From the IMG/VR virus record IMGVR_UViG_3300043446_005562, positions 186,001 to 250,000 of that record: 64,000 nt of DNA. One strand, 5' to 3'. Positions 4,802 through 32,777 of this stretch are shown here, in pieces (within the stretch, counting starts at the first letter, position 1; each line of letters begins with the position of its first letter). The notes under the pieces are model-generated. The model was given only the letters and a program-made list of their open reading frames with translations. It did no database searches and was not told the origin of the DNA. The position numbers and the translations under genes are program-made.

Positions 4802-5587
4802 TTATCTTTCTTGAATTTGTTCTATTGCCCATTCGGTGAACCACTTTTGGGCGCTCTGGGCAAATTTCCTAGGTCGTTCGCTAATTTCTCTTAGATCATT
4901 CCAAATCTGTTCAGCTCTAGCCTTTTCTTTTGTCAGCGCTTCGCGTATATGATCCGCGTCCTTTTTAAAGTACTCTAGTTGATCAGGAGTCTCAGCTAGA
5001 CCGAGTTTAACAAGTCTCAAGAATTTTGGATCATGCGCAAGCTTAATTAGTTCGGCCCACCAATCTTCATCCTCCTTTGCTTCAGTCTTAGTATCATGAT
5101 AAGTCATTAGATCATCTTCAATTGAATTAATAAACGCTTCGCCGCTTACATCGGGCACAATGATCAACCAGCCGCCGCTGTTGCCGCCCCAACCAGTATT
5201 TTCAATCCACGAATAGTACTCCTGAATATCCTCCTGAAAGAATTCACGCTGATCCTCAATCCAACTCCACCACATGCTGTCCAATTCATCATCACTTAGT
5301 TCTTCTTCAGTCATTCCAACTCCATGTCGGATTGCATCAAAATCCGGCCATGTATGAATTTTTGCGTCTATTGCAAAGTGATCCTCTCTAAAATTACGGC
5401 CTTCCCTATTCCACCAATACTCGTTTTCAAGTTCTCCCCACATGCGCTGAACTTCGTCCATTAGCTCAGGAATTCCTTCTTCAAAATAAAAGTCCTGATA
5501 GTCTTGACCGTAATCTCTAGCCAGAGACATGTCTTGTTCTTGCCATCGACGTATTTCAGTAATAAATTGTGTGAACGTCTTTACCAT
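4802..5587 (-). CDS. Acidic hypothetical protein with CTS-like N-terminus
   Basis: MVKTFTQFITE. Confidence 0.7.
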   Translation of the reverse strand: MVKTFTQFITEIRRWQEQDMSLARDYGQDYQDFYFEEGIPELMDEVQRMWGELENEYWWNREGRNFREDHFAIDAKIHTWPDFDAIRHGVGMTEEELSDDELDSMWWSWIEDQREFFQEDIQEYYSWIENTGWGGNSGGWLIIVPDVSGEAFINSIEDDLMTYHDTKTEAKEDEDWWAELIKLAHDPKFLRLVKLGLAETPDQLEYFKKDADHIREALTKEKARAEQIWNDLREISERPRKFAQSAQKWFTEWAIEQIQER

Positions 5588-5952
5588 TATCTACCCATTT
5601 TGCTTATTTCTATTGCCTGTAGTTGTTTGATTGCCTTTTCTCGACTGGGATGAGTTCCCAATACCTTTTTACCACTCTTATCAGTTACGACCCATTTGTT
5701 ACCGCGCTTAAGCACCTTTTCATTTAGTGCTTGATATTCAGAAAAACGAATAACTCGATTTTCGGATAGGGCGGGTTCCATTATAGCTTGTGGTTTTGGC
5801 TGTTGTATTGAGATGGACTCAACCTTATTCACAAGTTCACTAACCTTATCCCTAATCAATTCTAATTTTTGAATTTGATCTTGCGTCAACGATTCATTAG
5901 ACTCTTCAACAACAAAGAGATATTCAATAAAAGAATCGAGCTGATTTTCCAT
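5587..5952 (-). CDS. Hypothetical protein with basic C-terminal domain after an internal CTS-like motif
   Basis: RVIRFSEYQALNE followed by KRGNKWVVTDKSGKKVLGTH. Confidence 0.65.
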   Translation of the reverse strand: MENQLDSFIEYLFVVEESNESLTQDQIQKLELIRDKVSELVNKVESISIQQPKPQAIMEPALSENRVIRFSEYQALNEKVLKRGNKWVVTDKSGKKVLGTHPSREKAIKQLQAIEISKMGR

Positions 5953-25500: not shown

Positions 25501-25538
25501 AATAAAAAATGGGGCTTAAACTTGCGCTTAAGCCCCAT
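25501..25538 (-). terminator. Intrinsic terminator immediately upstream of the Cys-His-Leu-Arg tRNAs
   Basis: Perfect 11-bp stem ATGGGGCTTAA/TTAAGCCCCAT plus TTTTTATT. Confidence 0.85.
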
Positions 25539-25562
25539 GTAAGGTTTTAGTTTTCCATCACA

Positions 25563-25634
25563 TCACGACTTAAGTCCCTCAGATCTAGATCTGTGAGTAC
25601 ATAAACTTAATCGATGTAATGATAAGGTTTTCAT
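25563..25634 (-). CDS. Putative attenuator leader peptide (23 aa)
   Basis: MKTLSLHRLSLCTHRSRSEGLKS; lies between an AT-rich promoter-like motif and the terminator. Confidence 0.7.
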   Translation of the reverse strand: MKTLSLHRLSLCTHRSRSEGLKS

Positions 25635-27289: not shown

Positions 27290-29026
27290 TTATTTATACT
27301 CAACCTTGACTCTAGACCTGAACTCCGGTGGAAATTGGGTGCCGGCGTTCTTGAAAAGATCAGAAAAACAGCCGTCTATTAGATAGGTTACTGCCCAGTC
27401 TTCTGGGGTTCTGATTGATCGTCCAACTCCCTGTAAAACCGAGACTGACGTCTTCCAGTTATACCATTTTTGAGAATAGTTTAGCTTGGCAGCAACGTAC
27501 TTGTCACCAAGATGAGGATACGGCACCTTTAAGAAGATTTGAAATCTGGACAGGTCGTCTACTAGATTTAGACCCTCAAGTAGAGATGGACCCATTGCAA
27601 CGAGTCCACGAGTCTTCTTCATCTTCTTGAGCATCTTCTCCTTTTCATCAGAGCCTTTGTAGAGCAGCACTCTTTTTCTAAGCTCCTTAGGCAGATTCTT
27701 CCAAACCTTTTGACCAAGCTCATAGGAGCCGGTGTGAATGATGCCGGACTCGGTCGAATGAGTCTTTAGAATTTCCGAAACTCGATTGACTGCCCATTCT
27801 AAATTATCGGCCAGAAATCTGGCTGACAATTTTTTACCCGGATAGAAAAAGATCGGCGACTTATCCCATTTAAAATGAGTCTCAATCTTGAAGTACTTTG
27901 CGGCCTTGATACCGTGATTTCGCATAAAGTCTTGGGTGTTTCCCATCGTAGCGGTCATCAGCAGTTTAAAGCCGAATTTATTAAAGAAGTGCTTGTGTAG
28001 TAGGTAGTATTCGTCAATGCAATTGAACGTGATTGAGGTTTCGCCCGGGTTCTTAACCATTTTTTCAAGACCGGTCTTCTCGATTATTTCGCAATAGTCT
28101 TCAAGCTTACAGTGAACGTCCTTTAACCAATCTGTTAAGTTAAAAGTTGCCAACCAATCCTGTGGAACATCGTTCTCTCCAAACTCCTTACCTGCAACCT
28201 CCCGAATGTCGGCAGTTGCCTTAACAAGTCCACCCAAGATTTTTGTTATCTCTTTTAGGTGAGCTAGGATAACGGCGGGTGCCTCCTCTAAATAGATCTC
28301 CTCAATGTTCTTTTTGAGTCCAATTAGATTAACACTGGGCACCTTAAGTCCCAAGTCACCAATGTTCTCAAGAGTCTTCTCAACCTTTTTGTAAATGTCA
28401 TGGGAAACGATTGGGCTAAAATGACTCTGTACAATGTCTAGTAGCTTATGAGCCTCATCACAGACCACAAAGTCTCTTTGTGGAAATGGGGAGCCTTTGC
28501 CCTTGCCCTGCTGCTGTTGCTCAACGTAGTTTCTCTGAATTAGTGCGTACGGATAGGTGAGTAGCGCAACTGGCGATTTTATTGCCTTTTTTCTGGCAGT
28601 TAAGTATCCGCACTGTTTAAAACAAGGTAGCGATTCTGCAGCTTCGTATGATATGCCCTTGCTCTTACAGTCGCCGACCGAAAAACGTTCTCCGTTAACC
28701 GCGCATTCATAGTTATCAACTCCCTTAATATTACCCCAATTCCAGAGCTGCATGCCTCGAAAGTCTTTGACGTACTGCTCATGTAGAGCCAGATCGGATG
28801 CAAGAATATAGCCGCGGTTGCCTTTGAAGGCCAGAAAATCAGCAAAAAGCATTGCAATGACGGATTTACCCGAACCAGTCGGTGCGTCTAACAGAAAGAT
28901 TCCATTTGGATCTTCGTCGTATGCTTCAATTATTGAGAGAATTGCCTCTTTCTGCTGGGGTCTAAACTCAAACATTGGATGTTTACCCTTGACAAATTGT
29001 TCAAATTCAGCCTTTAAATTACTCAT
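27290..29026 (-). CDS. DinG/XPD-family ATP-dependent helicase with Fe-S cysteines
   Basis: RPQQ, APTGSGKS, four Cys between motifs Ia and II, CDEAH, MTAT, LQGVGRSIR. Confidence 0.85.
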   Translation of the reverse strand: MSNLKAEFEQFVKGKHPMFEFRPQQKEAILSIIEAYDEDPNGIFLLDAPTGSGKSVIAMLFADFLAFKGNRGYILASDLALHEQYVKDFRGMQLWNWGNIKGVDNYECAVNGERFSVGDCKSKGISYEAAESLPCFKQCGYLTARKKAIKSPVALLTYPYALIQRNYVEQQQQGKGKGSPFPQRDFVVCDEAHKLLDIVQSHFSPIVSHDIYKKVEKTLENIGDLGLKVPSVNLIGLKKNIEEIYLEEAPAVILAHLKEITKILGGLVKATADIREVAGKEFGENDVPQDWLATFNLTDWLKDVHCKLEDYCEIIEKTGLEKMVKNPGETSITFNCIDEYYLLHKHFFNKFGFKLLMTATMGNTQDFMRNHGIKAAKYFKIETHFKWDKSPIFFYPGKKLSARFLADNLEWAVNRVSEILKTHSTESGIIHTGSYELGQKVWKNLPKELRKRVLLYKGSDEKEKMLKKMKKTRGLVAMGPSLLEGLNLVDDLSRFQIFLKVPYPHLGDKYVAAKLNYSQKWYNWKTSVSVLQGVGRSIRTPEDWAVTYLIDGCFSDLFKNAGTQFPPEFRSRVKVEYK

Positions 29027-29739
29027 TATTTCCAGTAGTTTTGGTCCTTGTAAAAATAGGATTCGTTATTGCGATTAAGCCAATTTCTAAAAACCAGGCC
29101 TATCATTTTAAAGTACCCGTATCTTTTAAACCTTCGATTATCCTGCGTAATTAAATCCGGTACGAGCTTGAATTTTTTTGGCTTGATCTTTCGACTTAGC
29201 AGCCAATCTTCGCTTTGATGAGCGGCTTCGTCAAATCCTCCAAGTTCTAAAAATATGAGTCGCCTAACGAGTATAAAACCGCCTATTGCAAACGGTTTCG
29301 TTTTGGAAAGGTACCATGTGACTAGTCGATTAATGCTAAATATTAATTTAGCTCGAATGTCAAACTCACCACGATATTTTGGACAAGTTCCAATCATTGC
29401 CAAATTTTCATTCATTAAGCAGGTTAGCGCTCGTGAGACGACCGTTTTATCAGTAAATGTAATATCCGCATCAATGAACAGCAGATATGGTGTGGTAGCG
29501 AGGTCCGCGCCGGCATTACGGCCAACCGCCGGTAATCCTCCCTTAACTATCTCAACTCTTAGATCAAGTTGCTTCTTTAACTTTTCAATGATGCTGAGGG
29601 TTGAGTCAACTGAGCCAGCGTCCGCAATTATTATTCTCACGCCTTCCGTACCAAGCTGTCTTTTAATATGTCGAAGAGTTCTGCCAATATAGAGCTCTTC
29701 GTTGTAGCATGGAATGACGATTGTGAGCAGATCCTGCAT
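29026..29739 (-). CDS. GT2-family glycosyltransferase
   Basis: IVIPCYNEE, DAGSVD, GRNAGA, FIDAD, EDW. Confidence 0.9.
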   Translation of the reverse strand: MQDLLTIVIPCYNEELYIGRTLRHIKRQLGTEGVRIIIADAGSVDSTLSIIEKLKKQLDLRVEIVKGGLPAVGRNAGADLATTPYLLFIDADITFTDKTVVSRALTCLMNENLAMIGTCPKYRGEFDIRAKLIFSINRLVTWYLSKTKPFAIGGFILVRRLIFLELGGFDEAAHQSEDWLLSRKIKPKKFKLVPDLITQDNRRFKRYGYFKMIGLVFRNWLNRNNESYFYKDQNYWK

Positions 29740-30434
29740 TAGATGAATAGGGTTAATTTTTGAGAATTTAGATTAAATCCAGAAGTTTCGTATATTACGT
29801 ACGAAGTATTTTCAATCCAGTCACCGGTATTTAGATAGCGAACTCCATCGATCTGTTTGTCGGCCGGCGTATGAATGTGACCGCAGATAACCGTATGACA
29901 ATTTCTCTTTTTTGCTTGCCTTACCATTTCATTTTCAAAGTCGGTCATGAAAGAGATAGCCGCTTTGACATTATCCTTTAGGTATTTGGATAGGCTTGTC
30001 TTTTTATTAAACTTCTTTAGTAGTCTATCGATTACTATTGCTAAATCGTAACCGATTGAGCCAAGCATGCCTAACCAGTGCATCTTTACAATACCATCAT
30101 AGCGATCACCATGACAAAACCAGATACCGGCCTCACAAAATTCGTCAACTACCTTTATTCCACCTATCGTAACTGGTAAATATTCTCTAAGAAATTCATC
30201 GTGATTGCCAGCGATCCAGATAACCTCATGCTCCTTTGAGACCTTTAATAACTTTCTAATGAGGCGAGTGTGTTCAACCGAAAATTTCTTGTACTTTTTA
30301 AACAACCAACCGTCAATTATATCGCCGACCAGAATCAATCGGTCGAATTCGGTATTTTTTAGTAGTGCTATTACACCCTCGGTATTACAACCTTTAGAGC
30401 CAATGTGAACGTCCGATATTACTAGAGTTTTCAT
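29739..30434 (-). CDS. UDP-2,3-diacylglucosamine diphosphatase-like metallophosphoesterase (LpxH-like)
   Basis: ISDVHIG, VGDIIDGW, AGNHD, HGDRYD, CGHIH, NTGDW. Confidence 0.8.
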   Translation of the reverse strand: MKTLVISDVHIGSKGCNTEGVIALLKNTEFDRLILVGDIIDGWLFKKYKKFSVEHTRLIRKLLKVSKEHEVIWIAGNHDEFLREYLPVTIGGIKVVDEFCEAGIWFCHGDRYDGIVKMHWLGMLGSIGYDLAIVIDRLLKKFNKKTSLSKYLKDNVKAAISFMTDFENEMVRQAKKRNCHTVICGHIHTPADKQIDGVRYLNTGDWIENTSYVIYETSGFNLNSQKLTLFI

Positions 30435-30436
30435 AA

Positions 30437-30935
30437 TTAATCCTTTTCCCAGCCTTCCTCGGCATGGTCATATTCACAGCAGGGAAACTGTCGACCCTTA
30501 TCGTCAACGTGAGTCCAAACCTTGCCTTCCTTAATCCATACCCAAGGTTCATCCGATTTTCCCGGAAGTTCAGGTCTTTCTAAAGGCGGATGATAGGCAT
30601 TTACGTCAGTGTGTCTGTGATTACATTCACAACCTCTTGGAACGCAATCATCACAAGAATAGTCGTTCTCTTTGCTTGAATATCCGGGCAAGTAAACCCA
30701 GGTTGCGATCTTACCGCAATCGCATAATTCTTTACCAGCTATCAACATCAGTTAAATCTATTTCAGTTCCAGTTAAATGACTAAAGAGACGTAATTCACT
30801 ACCAATTCCATTCGGTGTACATTTCCAAGTAAGTAGCCCAACCTCACCATATATAGCCTTAATATGACTAATCCATTTATCAAACTTCTTCTGCTGCTTG
30901 TCATTTAATTCTATAATTATTTGTTTATTTGCCAT
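30437..30935 (-). other. Two small hypothetical CDSs (30437-30748 Cys-rich; 30732-30935)
   Basis: Tightly packed ORFs. Confidence 0.6.
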
Positions 30936-30952
30936 TGCATGTATTTAAAAAG

Positions 30953-31059
30953 TAGTCGGTCCGGGACTCGAACCCGTATGCTGTTGCCAGCGGGGACTTG
31001 TACAATCCCTGTGTCTGTCCATCGGCAGTTGTACACCTGCTCGCTTTCACCACCCGACT
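30953..31059 (-). ncRNA. Aberrant tRNA-like RNA (Leu-type scaffold, hairpin inserted in D-loop)
   Basis: AGTCGG/CCGACT acceptor, TTCGAGT T-loop, long variable arm, GGGAT-TGTACAA-GTCCC arm. Confidence 0.7.
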
Positions 31060-31065
31060 GAAAAA

Positions 31066-31142
31066 TGGAAGAGGGGGGAATCCAACCCACCGTCACGGCC
31101 GTTAGGGCTTGCTCTCATGTAGTGTCACTGAGCTACTCTTCC
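31066..31142 (-). ncRNA. Aberrant tRNA-like RNA with truncated anticodon arm
   Basis: Perfect GGAAGAG/CTCTTCC acceptor, GCTC/GAGC D-stem, TTGGATT T-loop, GCC-CTAAC-GGC arm. Confidence 0.6.
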
Positions 31143-31146
31143 CTTG

Positions 31147-31224
31147 TACCCTCTGAGAGACTCGAACTCTCACCCGAAGACTAGATCCTAAGTCTAGCGC
31201 GTCTACCAATTCCGCCAAGAGGGC
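31147..31224 (-). tRNA. tRNA-Leu(UAG)
   Basis: CTAGA-CTTAGGA-TCTAG, type II. Confidence 0.95.
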
Positions 31225-31235
31225 ATTCTATGAAA

Positions 31236-31661
31236 TTAATCGATTAGTGTTTCCATTTTAAAAGTTACAATCCACCTAGCGCAATCTTGAGGTAGTCGAT
31301 TAATGTGTTTGTAATTATTGATGTATCCCATCATGTTTGCAGACCCAATCGCATTTGCTGAATGTACCATCACTTTACAAACTGGGGCTCCATTCATCCA
31401 TTGCTCTACTAACCACTTTGTACAATCCATTCCTGTTTTTTCAGTAATGTTGTCGTAGTTAAGAGTGTAGTTATGATACACGTTGGTGTGCCATTCTTTC
31501 ATGGCTGAGTCACCTAAGTCGTGATCTAAGCTAATAAGAGCAATGTTCTCTAATCCAATTTCAGTTACCTTAGCTACAAACTCTTCGTAGTTACGTACTA
31601 CTGTCCAATCTTCTTTATTGATTGGAGTTCTTACGTCGTCTAGGTAAATATTGTATTTCAT
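31236..31661 (-). CDS. Cyclic-phosphate-processing receiver-like domain protein
   Basis: IYLDDVRTP, ISLDHDLG, TGMDC, VHSANAIG. Confidence 0.7.
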   Translation of the reverse strand: MKYNIYLDDVRTPINKEDWTVVRNYEEFVAKVTEIGLENIALISLDHDLGDSAMKEWHTNVYHNYTLNYDNITEKTGMDCTKWLVEQWMNGAPVCKVMVHSANAIGSANMMGYINNYKHINRLPQDCARWIVTFKMETLID

Positions 31662-31667
31662 GTAGCT

Positions 31668-31675
31668 ATTATACT
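31668..31675 (-). promoter_or_regulatory. Recurrent (A/G)GTATAAT promoter-like motif
   Basis: Same motif upstream of minus-strand units at 23265, 34178, 37047, 38683, 42799 and 62740 (GGTATAAT at 39169 and 50317). Confidence 0.65.
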
Positions 31676-31697
31676 AAGTTAAATCAGCTAGGGTTTA

Positions 31698-32777
31698 CTA
31701 GTCTCCGCCTTTTAGCAAAAATTTATTTGAGATTACCTTAAACGAAATTGATCTAACCATATTTCGGATTACCAAACCTTCACGCTCCGTACTTTCACAC
31801 AGGGCAGATTTGCCCTCGGCGAACTGCAACAGCTCTTCAATTGTATTGGGCAGTAGAAAATGATTATGAAGCATGGGTACCGTTTCAAGGCCCAATTCAT
31901 TGATCGTTTTTTCCAATTGGGCTTTAATGTAGTACTGATGTTCGTCGATATCGAAGATATTAAAGAACTTCAGAGTTTGACCCTTCAGCCTGTATGGATT
32001 GCCCTGAATTCCTTCACCGATAATCTCTCCTTGAAAGGAAACATTTTTACCAAGACTACGCATCTTTGTCTCAAGATCCAATTCTCTGGCAACCTTCCAC
32101 ATTGTGTTGTCTTCAGTCTCAAGCAGCTCAAGATTTCTAGAACAGATGCCAAATTCGCCATCCTTTACGTAGGCTGTGAAAGAGGATCCATCTAGCTTTT
32201 CAGTAACATAGAAGGAGGTTTTTGTGTAGCCCTCATACTCGTTGGTCAAGTTCTGCACTCGCTCTTCATCTGTTTTTGGAATGAACGATGGAAAAAGACC
32301 CTTGGCCACACCAGCTAATGAAGCCGGTACCGGCGGTTCATACTTAATGATTCCCAAGTGTTTACTTACATCCAATCCTTCTTCAATCACCAGCGCATCA
32401 TCGTAAGGCCCCAGTTGTAGCTGCTCTCCCCATGGCTGTTCACTGACTCCAACGACCATTTCCTCAGCACAGTTTAGAGTTTCAAGCGGTAGGACTAGAC
32501 CTTGCGATACTTGGCCTCTGAGCTTAATCGTCTTTAATCGAAAGCCTTCAGAGCCGTCCGCTAATTTTCGATAGGAACTCTTACGTAAGAACTCAAACTC
32601 CTCCTTTATTGGCAGGAACGAGTCAATTTCGCAATAGATGCACAGATCTCCCGGTTTGTACTCGCCCTTTTTGCAAACGACGTTCCAGTTATTGATCTGT
32701 ACGACTTCAATCACGTCAGCTCCTTCGATCGGTCTAACGTCTCTGACTCTTTGAATACTTGCTAATTTTCTTTCCAT
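31698..32777 (-). CDS. RNA ligase, DRB0094 family
   Basis: RKLASIQ, YCEIDS, IKLRGQVSQG, PKTDEERVQN, TEKLDGSS, QGEIIGEGIQGN, EGLV, FKVISN. Confidence 0.9.
   Translation of the reverse strand: MERKLASIQRVRDVRPIEGADVIEVVQINNWNVVCKKGEYKPGDLCIYCEIDSFLPIKEEFEFLRKSSYRKLADGSEGFRLKTIKLRGQVSQGLVLPLETLNCAEEMVVGVSEQPWGEQLQLGPYDDALVIEEGLDVSKHLGIIKYEPPVPASLAGVAKGLFPSFIPKTDEERVQNLTNEYEGYTKTSFYVTEKLDGSSFTAYVKDGEFGICSRNLELLETEDNTMWKVARELDLETKMRSLGKNVSFQGEIIGEGIQGNPYRLKGQTLKFFNIFDIDEHQYYIKAQLEKTINELGLETVPMLHNHFLLPNTIEELLQFAEGKSALCESTEREGLVIRNMVRSISFKVISNKFLLKGGD

Follow-up and report, generated by a model that had tools for sequence, protein, structure and literature searches.

The DNA stretch analysed here, called the window in the following, comprises 64,000 nt (bases 186001–250000) of the 252.6 kb phage record IMGVR_UViG_3300043446_005562 and carries on its minus strand, at 30953–31059, a 107 nt-long tRNA-like gene derived from a tRNA-Leu(UAA) that we named el107. 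The record has a G+C content of 41% and an estimated completeness of ~93%, and the public runs containing the window sequence are freshwater metagenomes. ARAGORN and Rfam identified 19 tRNA genes in the genome, all of them inside the window and on the minus strand, which together serve each amino acid but Val, Lys and Asn. The minus-strand gene order around el107 is RNA ligase, cREC, tRNA-Leu(UAG), a degenerate tRNA-like element of 77 nt (el77), el107 and an open reading frame (ORF) of 67 aa. The ligase (31698–32777, minus strand) consists of N-terminal OB and RNA_ligase nucleotidyltransferase domains (Pfam PF21189 and PF09414; phrog_968) and is a close relative of the RNA ligase of Naegleria gruberi (PDB 5cot, E = 1.4e-72), an enzyme of the nick-sealing Rnl5 type. 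The neighbouring protein (31236–31661, minus strand; Pfam PF20274, 81 bits) contains cREC_REC, a predicted cyclic-phosphate-processing receiver domain. In jumbo phages, where tRNAs are paired with RNA ligases and cREC, this domain has been predicted to process 2′,3′-cyclic phosphate ends for the ligases (PMC7824862). The tRNA-Leu(UAG) gene (31146–31224, minus strand; ARAGORN, Rfam 57.8 bits) lies directly upstream of el77 (31066–31142, minus strand), and el107 is followed by an encoded C74 at 30952.

Numbered so that element position p corresponds to window coordinate 31060 − p, el107 possesses an acceptor stem in which positions 1–6 pair with 101–106, a G.A mismatch at 7:100, a U8 and a GUG/CAC D stem (10–12 with 47–49). 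Its D-loop is interrupted by a 21-nt hairpin, CG(A)GCAG-GUGUACAA-CUGCCG, at positions 17–37 (31023–31043, minus strand; loop 7-mer at 31029–31035), downstream of which a UGG is kept. The arm in the anticodon position, GGGAU-UGUACAA-GUCCC, occupies positions 51–67 (30993–31009, minus strand; loop 7-mer at 30998–31004), and its 7-nt loop reads in the canonical register as anticodon UAC preceded by G33, not U33. A long variable arm (GCUG-GCAA-CAGC) and a T arm (CGGG-UUCGAGU-CCCG) follow at 30962–30992 (minus strand), the T stem having 4 bp and an A.G mismatch as its fifth pair, and the discriminator is A73. In tRNA numbering, the two mismatches are 7:66 and 49:65. The minimum-free-energy fold (−39.6 kcal/mol, z = −2.0) reproduced the acceptor, inserted, anticodon-position, variable-arm and T-arm helices. 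All 28 modelled pairs are standard, and the deviations of the element lie mainly in the two loops, unlike what random decay would produce. The original prediction, made from the letters of the DNA, had described a Leu-type scaffold of 107 nt with a hairpin in its D-loop, intact pairing, a UAC anticodon behind G33 and the same 7-mer in both loops. All of this was recovered: the 7-mer UGUACAA can be read directly twice, and ARAGORN reported UAC once the hairpin had been deleted.

Native el107 escapes the common tRNA detectors. ARAGORN gave no call under default or loose thresholds, and a 411-nt search gave no match to the Rfam tRNA model (RF00005, threshold 29 bits) even at E ≤ 10. When stretches of 15–31 nt were systematically removed in silico within the D region (221 constructs), default ARAGORN called a full-length class-II tRNA with start position 1 and anticodon UAC in 65 constructs, with deletions of 21–27 nt, indicating that the hairpin is the main cause of the detector failure.

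The origin of the scaffold was addressed with a covariance model (R1) built from the el107 sequence and structure and searched against ~1.2 Mb of phage loci. The best non-self matches were all tRNA-Leu(UAA) genes, with model positions 1–107 covered; genes from other phages scored 51.1 (L115), 50.5 (L027), 47.4 (L274) and 40.7 bits (L046), and the window's own tRNA-Leu(UAA) 34.4 bits. In these alignments, 25–28 el107 model positions stand against 2–5 nt in normal tRNA-Leu genes, a length excess that identifies the insert as the hairpin, placed between D-loop positions 16 and 17. Behind the insert, AUGG-ACAGA-CAC of el107 aligns to the usual UUGG-CAGA-CAC. Compared with the loop of tRNA-Leu(UAA), CUUAAAA, the anticodon-position loop differs only by C32U, U33G and A36C, and these three substitutions yield UGUACAA, the 7-mer of the inserted loop. 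The loop identity noticed at the outset stands as a duplicated 7-mer, whereas its reading as a Tyr-type loop gave way to a three-substitution derivative of CUUAAAA. A Tyr-derived anticodon arm, hinted at by an earlier alignment, was likewise dropped in favour of the simpler Leu(UAA) derivation from the R1 alignment. El107 retains the class-II scaffold with long variable arm, 3-bp D stem and A73, but has no leucine anticodon (NAG or YAA). Its variable arm belongs to the proteobacterial tRNA-Leu(CAA/UAA) type, the nearest bacterial case being the tRNA-Leu(CAA) of a gammaproteobacterial metagenome-assembled genome from Lake Baikal (L183); the tRNA-Leu(CAA) arm probe is common to many phyla, so that the host could not be inferred from it.

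The repeated loop sequence sets el107 apart within its own genome. TGTACAA occurs in 16 copies on the tRNA strand of the 252.6-kb genome, and only the two copies of el107 lie in stable hairpin loops (−7.8 and −9.9 kcal/mol; remaining sites −0.4 to −5.8). The a priori chance of a second loop with the same 7-mer is ~1e-4, and the loop repeat is more than chance. Because UGUACA is palindromic, the two loops are identical and at the same time mutually complementary. Could the repeat be a feature of the DNA instead? The two TGTACA sites are perfect 6-bp palindromes 31 bp apart, a spacing near three helical turns, as might suit a protein-binding or restriction-related site. We consider this the least probable of the explanations weighed here: TGTACA is an ordinary word in the genome (observed/expected ratio (O/E) 0.78 against the Markov expectation, rank 15 of 64 palindromes), the other copies share no context, and both copies in el107 fall exactly into RNA hairpin loops of a tRNA scaffold. 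Under Markov expectations, phage sense strands were not depleted in UACA (O/E 1.05) or TGTACA (0.78–0.85), and pressure from a MazF-type nuclease (UACA) or from restriction (TGTACA) was rejected on these grounds. We also discarded a queuosine/TGT bait and a Ro60/Y-RNA partner, as the phage has no TGT/DpdA or TROVE gene. The same applies to a product cut at both loops and re-joined, which, worked out by hand, would be 76 nt long and form no cloverleaf.

Evidence for the RNA comes from rivers. Three riverine metatranscriptomes yielded short contigs (198, 166 and 181 nt) confined to 30952–31145, that is, el77, the spacer and el107, and the flanking ORFs (30300–30697 and 31269–31676) had zero depth in these RNA runs. 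In a DNA run from another sample, the whole 1.5 kb was evenly covered and matched the window exactly. Three differences separate the RNA contigs from the window, one in the spacer and two in el77 (positions 38 and 67), with none within el107. The el77 variants are the alleles of a related phage lineage, lineage B, so the contigs represent a second lineage carrying el107 and not RNA editing. In two of the three RNA runs the contig is circularly permuted: ...GACUA-C is followed by CA, which is absent from the genome and completes CCA, and then by A31145 (the base that directly follows the C74 encoded with tRNA-Leu), an AAG leader and el77, giving a unit of 196 nt. At the least, the RNA ends are tRNA-type processing sites, and el77 and el107 stay joined in part of the pool. 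The absence of expression, named beforehand as grounds for giving up the original prediction, was not what we found: the RNA-library contigs cover both elements and include the CCA end. No promoter stood out near the element, and the sole terminator-like site there is the T arm with its T run.

The head-to-tail junction could be a circle or concatemer made by a ligase, the result of reverse transcriptase template switching from one end of a linear 196-nt RNA to the other, or a tandem DNA repeat in the river strain. Segmental amplification of tRNA regions has been described for T6 (PMC13096335). That the CCA-matured el77-el107 RNA is ligated by the Rnl5-type ligase from its 3′ end to its 5′ leader, forming a 196-nt circle or concatemer, is in our estimate distinctly unlikely. 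If it were true, the product would be an exonuclease-proof tRNA mimic with two identical loops, a kind of phage RNA undescribed before, and the phage RNA ligase would gain a substrate of its own.

The contigs also bear on the idea that the D-loop hairpin is a small intron, which an endonuclease together with the ligase next door would remove, leaving a mature tRNA. Such splicing would suit the acceptance of the hairpin-less tRNA by ARAGORN, the adjacent ligase and cyclic-phosphate-processing domain, and a phage (L032) in which three tRNAs with a conserved ~53-nt insert lie right after the ligase. However, the hairpin is kept in all RNA contigs, a finding that is not decisive because contigs can hide minor forms. 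Moreover, the base of the hairpin has no bulge-helix-bulge motif, the spliced product would still carry G33 and the mismatches, and the copying of the anticodon loop by the inserted loop would be left unexplained. We regard an intron as very improbable.

We then compared the locus with its relatives. Patterns built on the loops, the D-arm flanks, the T arm and el77 detected no el107 homologue in collections of viral contigs, metagenomes and genomes, and none was found by blastn in phage records, by blastn or nhmmer over 80 ligase loci, or by R1 in the ~1.2 Mb of phage loci. In DNA searches, el107 occurred only in the window's own strain, of which two independent assemblies (L236 and L237) are 100% identical over tRNA-Leu, el77 and el107; the DNA arrangement is the same in three independent assemblies or runs. 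Close relatives, fetched through the 67-aa ORF from JGI, ENA and Logan assemblies, fall into lineages B (L004, L248–255), C (L240–242) and D (L243–247). All three kept the ligase, cREC, tRNA-Leu (98.7–100% identity) and el77 (91–95%), and el107 is absent from them. Where the window reads CATTTTT-C-[el107]-C-TTTTT, only one T run, five or six bases long, is present in lineages B, C and D. Alignments with L004 and the three lineages thus define two direct repeats at the presence/absence polymorphism, the TTTTT runs upstream (31061–31065, minus strand) and downstream (30947–30951, minus strand) of el107, and such a layout could have been left by an insertion that duplicated 5 bp or, equally, by a deletion between the repeats. 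Furthermore, the three lineages have an extra ORF of 225–228 aa between cREC and tRNA-Leu (L240:282–968, L248:292–969 and equivalents; no Pfam match) that is absent in the window. The presence or absence of this ORF among close relatives indicates that the region is mosaic.

This distribution agrees with the main rival explanation, a young relic that is still processed. According to it, a duplicated or acquired tRNA-Leu was disabled by the hairpin and the loop mutations, is neutral, and is still transcribed and end-processed only by virtue of its position in the tRNA operon and its acceptor/T-arm minihelix. The orphan status of el107 and its absence from lineages B, C and D would follow naturally from such a history, as would its mismatches 7:66 and 49:65, its G33, and its being missed by Rfam and ARAGORN. 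The neighbour el77 is degenerate as well, with the 1:72 pair broken in lineage B, and phage tRNA arrays often contain aberrant tRNA-like genes that go uncalled. Harder to reconcile with a relic are the helices of el107, which are all intact including the inserted one, and the three substitutions in a 7-nt loop that recreate the 7-mer of the inserted loop exactly, which is difficult to achieve by drift. The element is also unchanged between two lineages that differ at three adjacent sites, a weak argument given that 3 changes in 86 nt outside el107 and 0 inside (194 nt total) correspond to p of only about 0.09. On balance we consider a relic less likely than not, but a serious rival.

A working but odd tRNA could be another outcome, charged by leucyl-tRNA synthetase (LeuRS) or valyl-tRNA synthetase (A35, C36, A73) and inserting Leu or Val at GUA, or using a shifted GUA register to read Tyr codons. 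The A73, the Leu-type scaffold, the 7-nt loop with UAC and the CCA end in the RNA speak for such a tRNA, as does the lack of Val, Lys and Asn tRNAs in the phage; LeuRS ignores the anticodon. Set against this are the G33 in place of the near-universal U33, the two mismatches in the 12-bp acceptor branch and the 21-nt insert, which displaces G18-G19 within an oversized D-loop, an arrangement to which E. coli LeuRS is sensitive. The RNA contigs keep el77 fused, so that at least part of the pool is immature at its 5′ end, and el107 is absent in sister lineages that are otherwise alike at this locus, a comparison that covered tRNA-Leu and el77. Ordinary decoding is disfavoured by these features, and we judge a working tRNA quite improbable; the decoding as Val or Tyr contained in the original prediction is weakened by G33, the mismatches at the acceptor/T junction and the absence from three sister lineages.

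El107 is thus probably a non-decoding tRNA-like RNA. A functional role outside decoding is suggested by the retained scaffold, the intact helices, the pointed changes in the loop, the CCA end and the healing and sealing enzymes alongside. Our leading interpretation, which remains tentative, is that of a real, transcribed, CCA-tailed and lineage-specific RNA of this kind, encoded by an accessory gene at the tail of an RNA-repair string and acting as a bait or competitor. Such an RNA would have arisen when a phage tRNA-Leu(UAA)-type gene gained the 21-nt hairpin in the solvent-exposed part of its D-loop, after which the three anticodon-loop substitutions would have given both loops the sequence UGUACAA. 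The scaffold appears to keep what host processing requires, namely the acceptor helix, the T arm, U8, the equivalent of G18-G19 and A73, so that the RNA would be trimmed and CCA-ended and could accumulate together with el77 as an RNA of ~196 nt. No CCA-adding enzyme is encoded by the phage, hence the CCA would come from the host. The tRNA body would then present two copies of a single-stranded motif to a host factor directed at the anticodon loops of tRNAs, whether to attack or to bind them, and the adjacent healing and sealing enzymes could re-seal the RNA after a cut. Alternatively or additionally, the palindromic loops could pair, most plausibly between molecules. A role as bait or competitive substrate in conflicts over tRNA is in our view the likeliest mechanism, one that we hold loosely, and the adjoining Rnl5-type ligase and cREC may lend context to the decoy idea, one of three functions offered in the original prediction alongside a mistranslating tRNA and a synthetase binder.

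Several observations weigh against this interpretation. The RNA evidence consists of assembled contigs with a depth of 2.7–6.5, and the difference in variation between el107 and its surroundings is not significant at the p value given above. A transcript need only be tRNA-shaped to be processed and receive a CCA tail, and expression is therefore no proof of function. A river RNA library (X17, record 1) also contained an 11-kb contig of a more distant phage at depth 14, which matches 30698–30763 and 31699–31747 and spans 801 nt over a stretch that measures 935 nt in the window, with no tRNA-Leu, el77 or el107 aligned there; long phage sequence, as transcripts or DNA, is accordingly present in that RNA library. 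Every DNA copy of el107 is 100% identical and homologues are lacking, so that there is no covariation to support the structure. Its absence from lineages B, C and D makes the element dispensable, and it could be a recent passenger. The lack of depletion of UACA and TGTACA speaks against a host nuclease of that specificity acting on mRNA, and we know of no target nuclease for el107. Finally, the phage encodes neither TGT/DpdA nor Ro60/TROVE nor a CCA-adding enzyme, any of which might have been a dedicated partner.

Next after the relic stands the explanation that the RNA self-associates, its palindromic loops kissing, most plausibly between molecules, to form dimers or chains, in which case the repeat would be structural and not a bait. 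UGUACAA and UUGUACA can form a 7-bp helix (−7.1 kcal/mol for the free duplex), both copies are single-stranded in loops of 7–8 nt, and the loop substitutions generate the palindrome. An intramolecular kiss would be geometrically unlikely in an L-shaped tRNA. Both motifs recur in a tRNA-Leu-like scaffold unrelated to el107 (L101), but its relatives L113 and L115 have the scaffold without the motifs, and L101 was found by a pattern specifying the motif, in a scan whose 27 matches are by rough estimate mostly due to chance. L101 was for the same reason rejected as a second member of an el107 family; it probably belongs to an unrelated family that matches the motif by chance. Taken together, self-association appears unlikely to us.

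Should the twin loops be a bait or a pairing device, as in our preferred interpretation or in self-association, the virus would use the tRNA body as a stable carrier of a short RNA motif. Recent work has shown that phages use their tRNA genes as weapons against bacterial immunity that cleaves tRNA, and the odd tRNA-like RNAs that accompany them lack an assigned function. Among such RNAs, el107 is unusually legible: it has a clear tRNA-Leu parent, from which one hairpin and three loop bases set it apart, it lies alongside RNA-repair enzymes, there are natural lineages with and without it, and it is detectable in environmental RNA.

The organization of the el107 locus resembles that of the small RNAs species 1 and 2 (rnaC and rnaD) at the distal end of the tRNA cluster of phage T4, where tRNA-Arg, rnaD (119 nt) and rnaC (139 nt) follow each other as tRNA-Leu, el77 and el107 do here. 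To our knowledge, the function of these T4 RNAs is still unknown some fifty years after their discovery. One primary transcript gives rise both to them and to the tRNAs (PMC2330249). T4 rnaC combines a canonical T arm (CCGGG-UUCGAAU-CCCGG) with long additional hairpins. Unlike el107, rnaC and rnaD have no cloverleaf with D and anticodon arms and no duplicated loop motif, and with R1 we obtained 13.4 bits (E 0.67) for rnaC and no match for rnaD, so that they are not homologous to el107. El107 shares with them the position and, judged from assembled RNA-only contigs with silent flanks, the accumulation as RNA.

Phage tRNAs that counteract tRNA-cleaving defences are known from T5, with tRNA-Tyr against the PtuAB of retron-Eco7 and tRNA-Lys against PARIS, and from T6, with amplification of tRNA-Tyr against Septu (PMC11555353, PMC11464382, PMC13096335). 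Like these, el107 is tRNA-shaped and comes from a tRNA-rich phage region, in its case beside RNA-repair genes. The anti-defence tRNAs are working tRNAs that take over decoding from the host tRNA that was cleaved, whereas el107 has the G33, the D-loop hairpin, the mismatches and the motif in duplicate. We know of no cognate defence system for el107.

Allo-tRNAs, which are charged by seryl-tRNA synthetase, were a further suggestion of the original prediction. El107 shares with them the long variable arm, an odd architecture, a mismatch between anticodon and identity, and the occurrence in phages and metagenomes (PMC5389517, PMC7609411). They are defined by a 12-bp acceptor branch in an 8/4 or 9/3 arrangement (PMC5389517). 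In el107, an 8/4 reading requires the G.A mismatch and a U8.G65 wobble, and 7/5 with two mismatches matches the tRNA-Leu genes column by column. With A73 instead of G73 and no clean 8/4 or 9/3 branch, the allo-tRNA label had to be withdrawn. A targeted term search of a review of non-canonical tRNAs returned no hairpin inserted in a D-loop.

Bacterial Y RNAs (YrlA), with a tRNA-like module bound to Ro60/Rsr, occur in some phages too and are linked to RNA repair (PMC7824862). They are non-coding and mimic the acceptor, T and D region of tRNA as el107 does, but the ends of el107 form an acceptor stem and not a Ro-binding stem. Rfam gave no YrlA match on el107, and no TROVE/Ro60 gene was found in the phage. 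Engineered aptamer-tagged tRNAs, in which a hairpin is grafted on a tRNA body with processing and stability kept (PMC7590224), come close in design; unlike el107, these scaffolds are man-made and have the graft in the variable or anticodon arm, not in the D-loop.

The companion element el77 scores 25.8 bits with the Rfam tRNA model, below the 29-bit threshold. It has perfect acceptor and D stems, a T loop UUGGAUU and, in place of the anticodon arm, a stub of 3 bp and 5 nt. El77 is conserved in all four lineages, its 1:72 pair being G-C, G.A, G.U and A-U in lineages A, B, C and D, respectively; covariation among the six sequences was not significant.

Other odd tRNA-like genes were noticed in the phage loci. 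Directly past the RNA ligase of L032, three consecutive tRNA genes (5308–5430, 5439–5564 and 5571–5698, plus strand) carry related ~53-nt inserts, seemingly in the 5′ strand of the anticodon stem, that match no ribozyme family. Read without the insert, the second is a tRNA-Ile(UAU) and the third a tRNA-Gly(UCC); ARAGORN misses all three, and Rfam gives the first 49.5 bits. These inserts may be a small family of tRNA introns linked to the ligase. The tRNA-Leu-like family of L101 (1791–1907), L113 (6315–6445, minus strand) and L115 (10038–10155) is uncalled as well; its members have identical acceptor and D arms, an identical T arm (TAAGG-UGCAAAU-CCUUA) and a hypervariable middle that varies in length by ~20 nt, and the L115 member directly precedes a normal tRNA-Leu(UAA). 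Between the RNA ligase and tRNA-Leu(UAA), L027 and L028 (5070–5165, plus strand) contain an uncalled 96-nt tRNA-like element with a perfect 7-bp acceptor, a T arm and an odd interior with the hairpin GACC-(12 nt)-GGUC. Aberrant tRNA-like genes with a hairpin loop (A)UUGUACAA lie in the phage tRNA arrays of L265 (6368–6480, minus strand) and L274 (1087–1203, plus strand); both came from a pattern search that specified this loop motif, so they do not independently attest to a motif family. In a ligase-bearing phage contig, ARAGORN called tRNAs with the four-base anticodon cgta (L046:538–620 and L048:184–266) and a tRNA-SeC(tca) (L046:4889–4963), which may be frameshift or stop suppressors.

Within the window, a calcineurin-like metallophosphoesterase (29739–30434, minus strand) and a family-2 glycosyltransferase (29026–29739, minus strand) are encoded past small ORFs downstream of el107, and the former may be part of an RNA end-healing set. 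A sub-threshold Rfam match at 25502–25588 is a terminator hairpin only. In the whole genome (G000), CATATG has 0 sites versus ~16 expected, and CTATAG and GCTAGC are also depleted, which looks like restriction-site avoidance.

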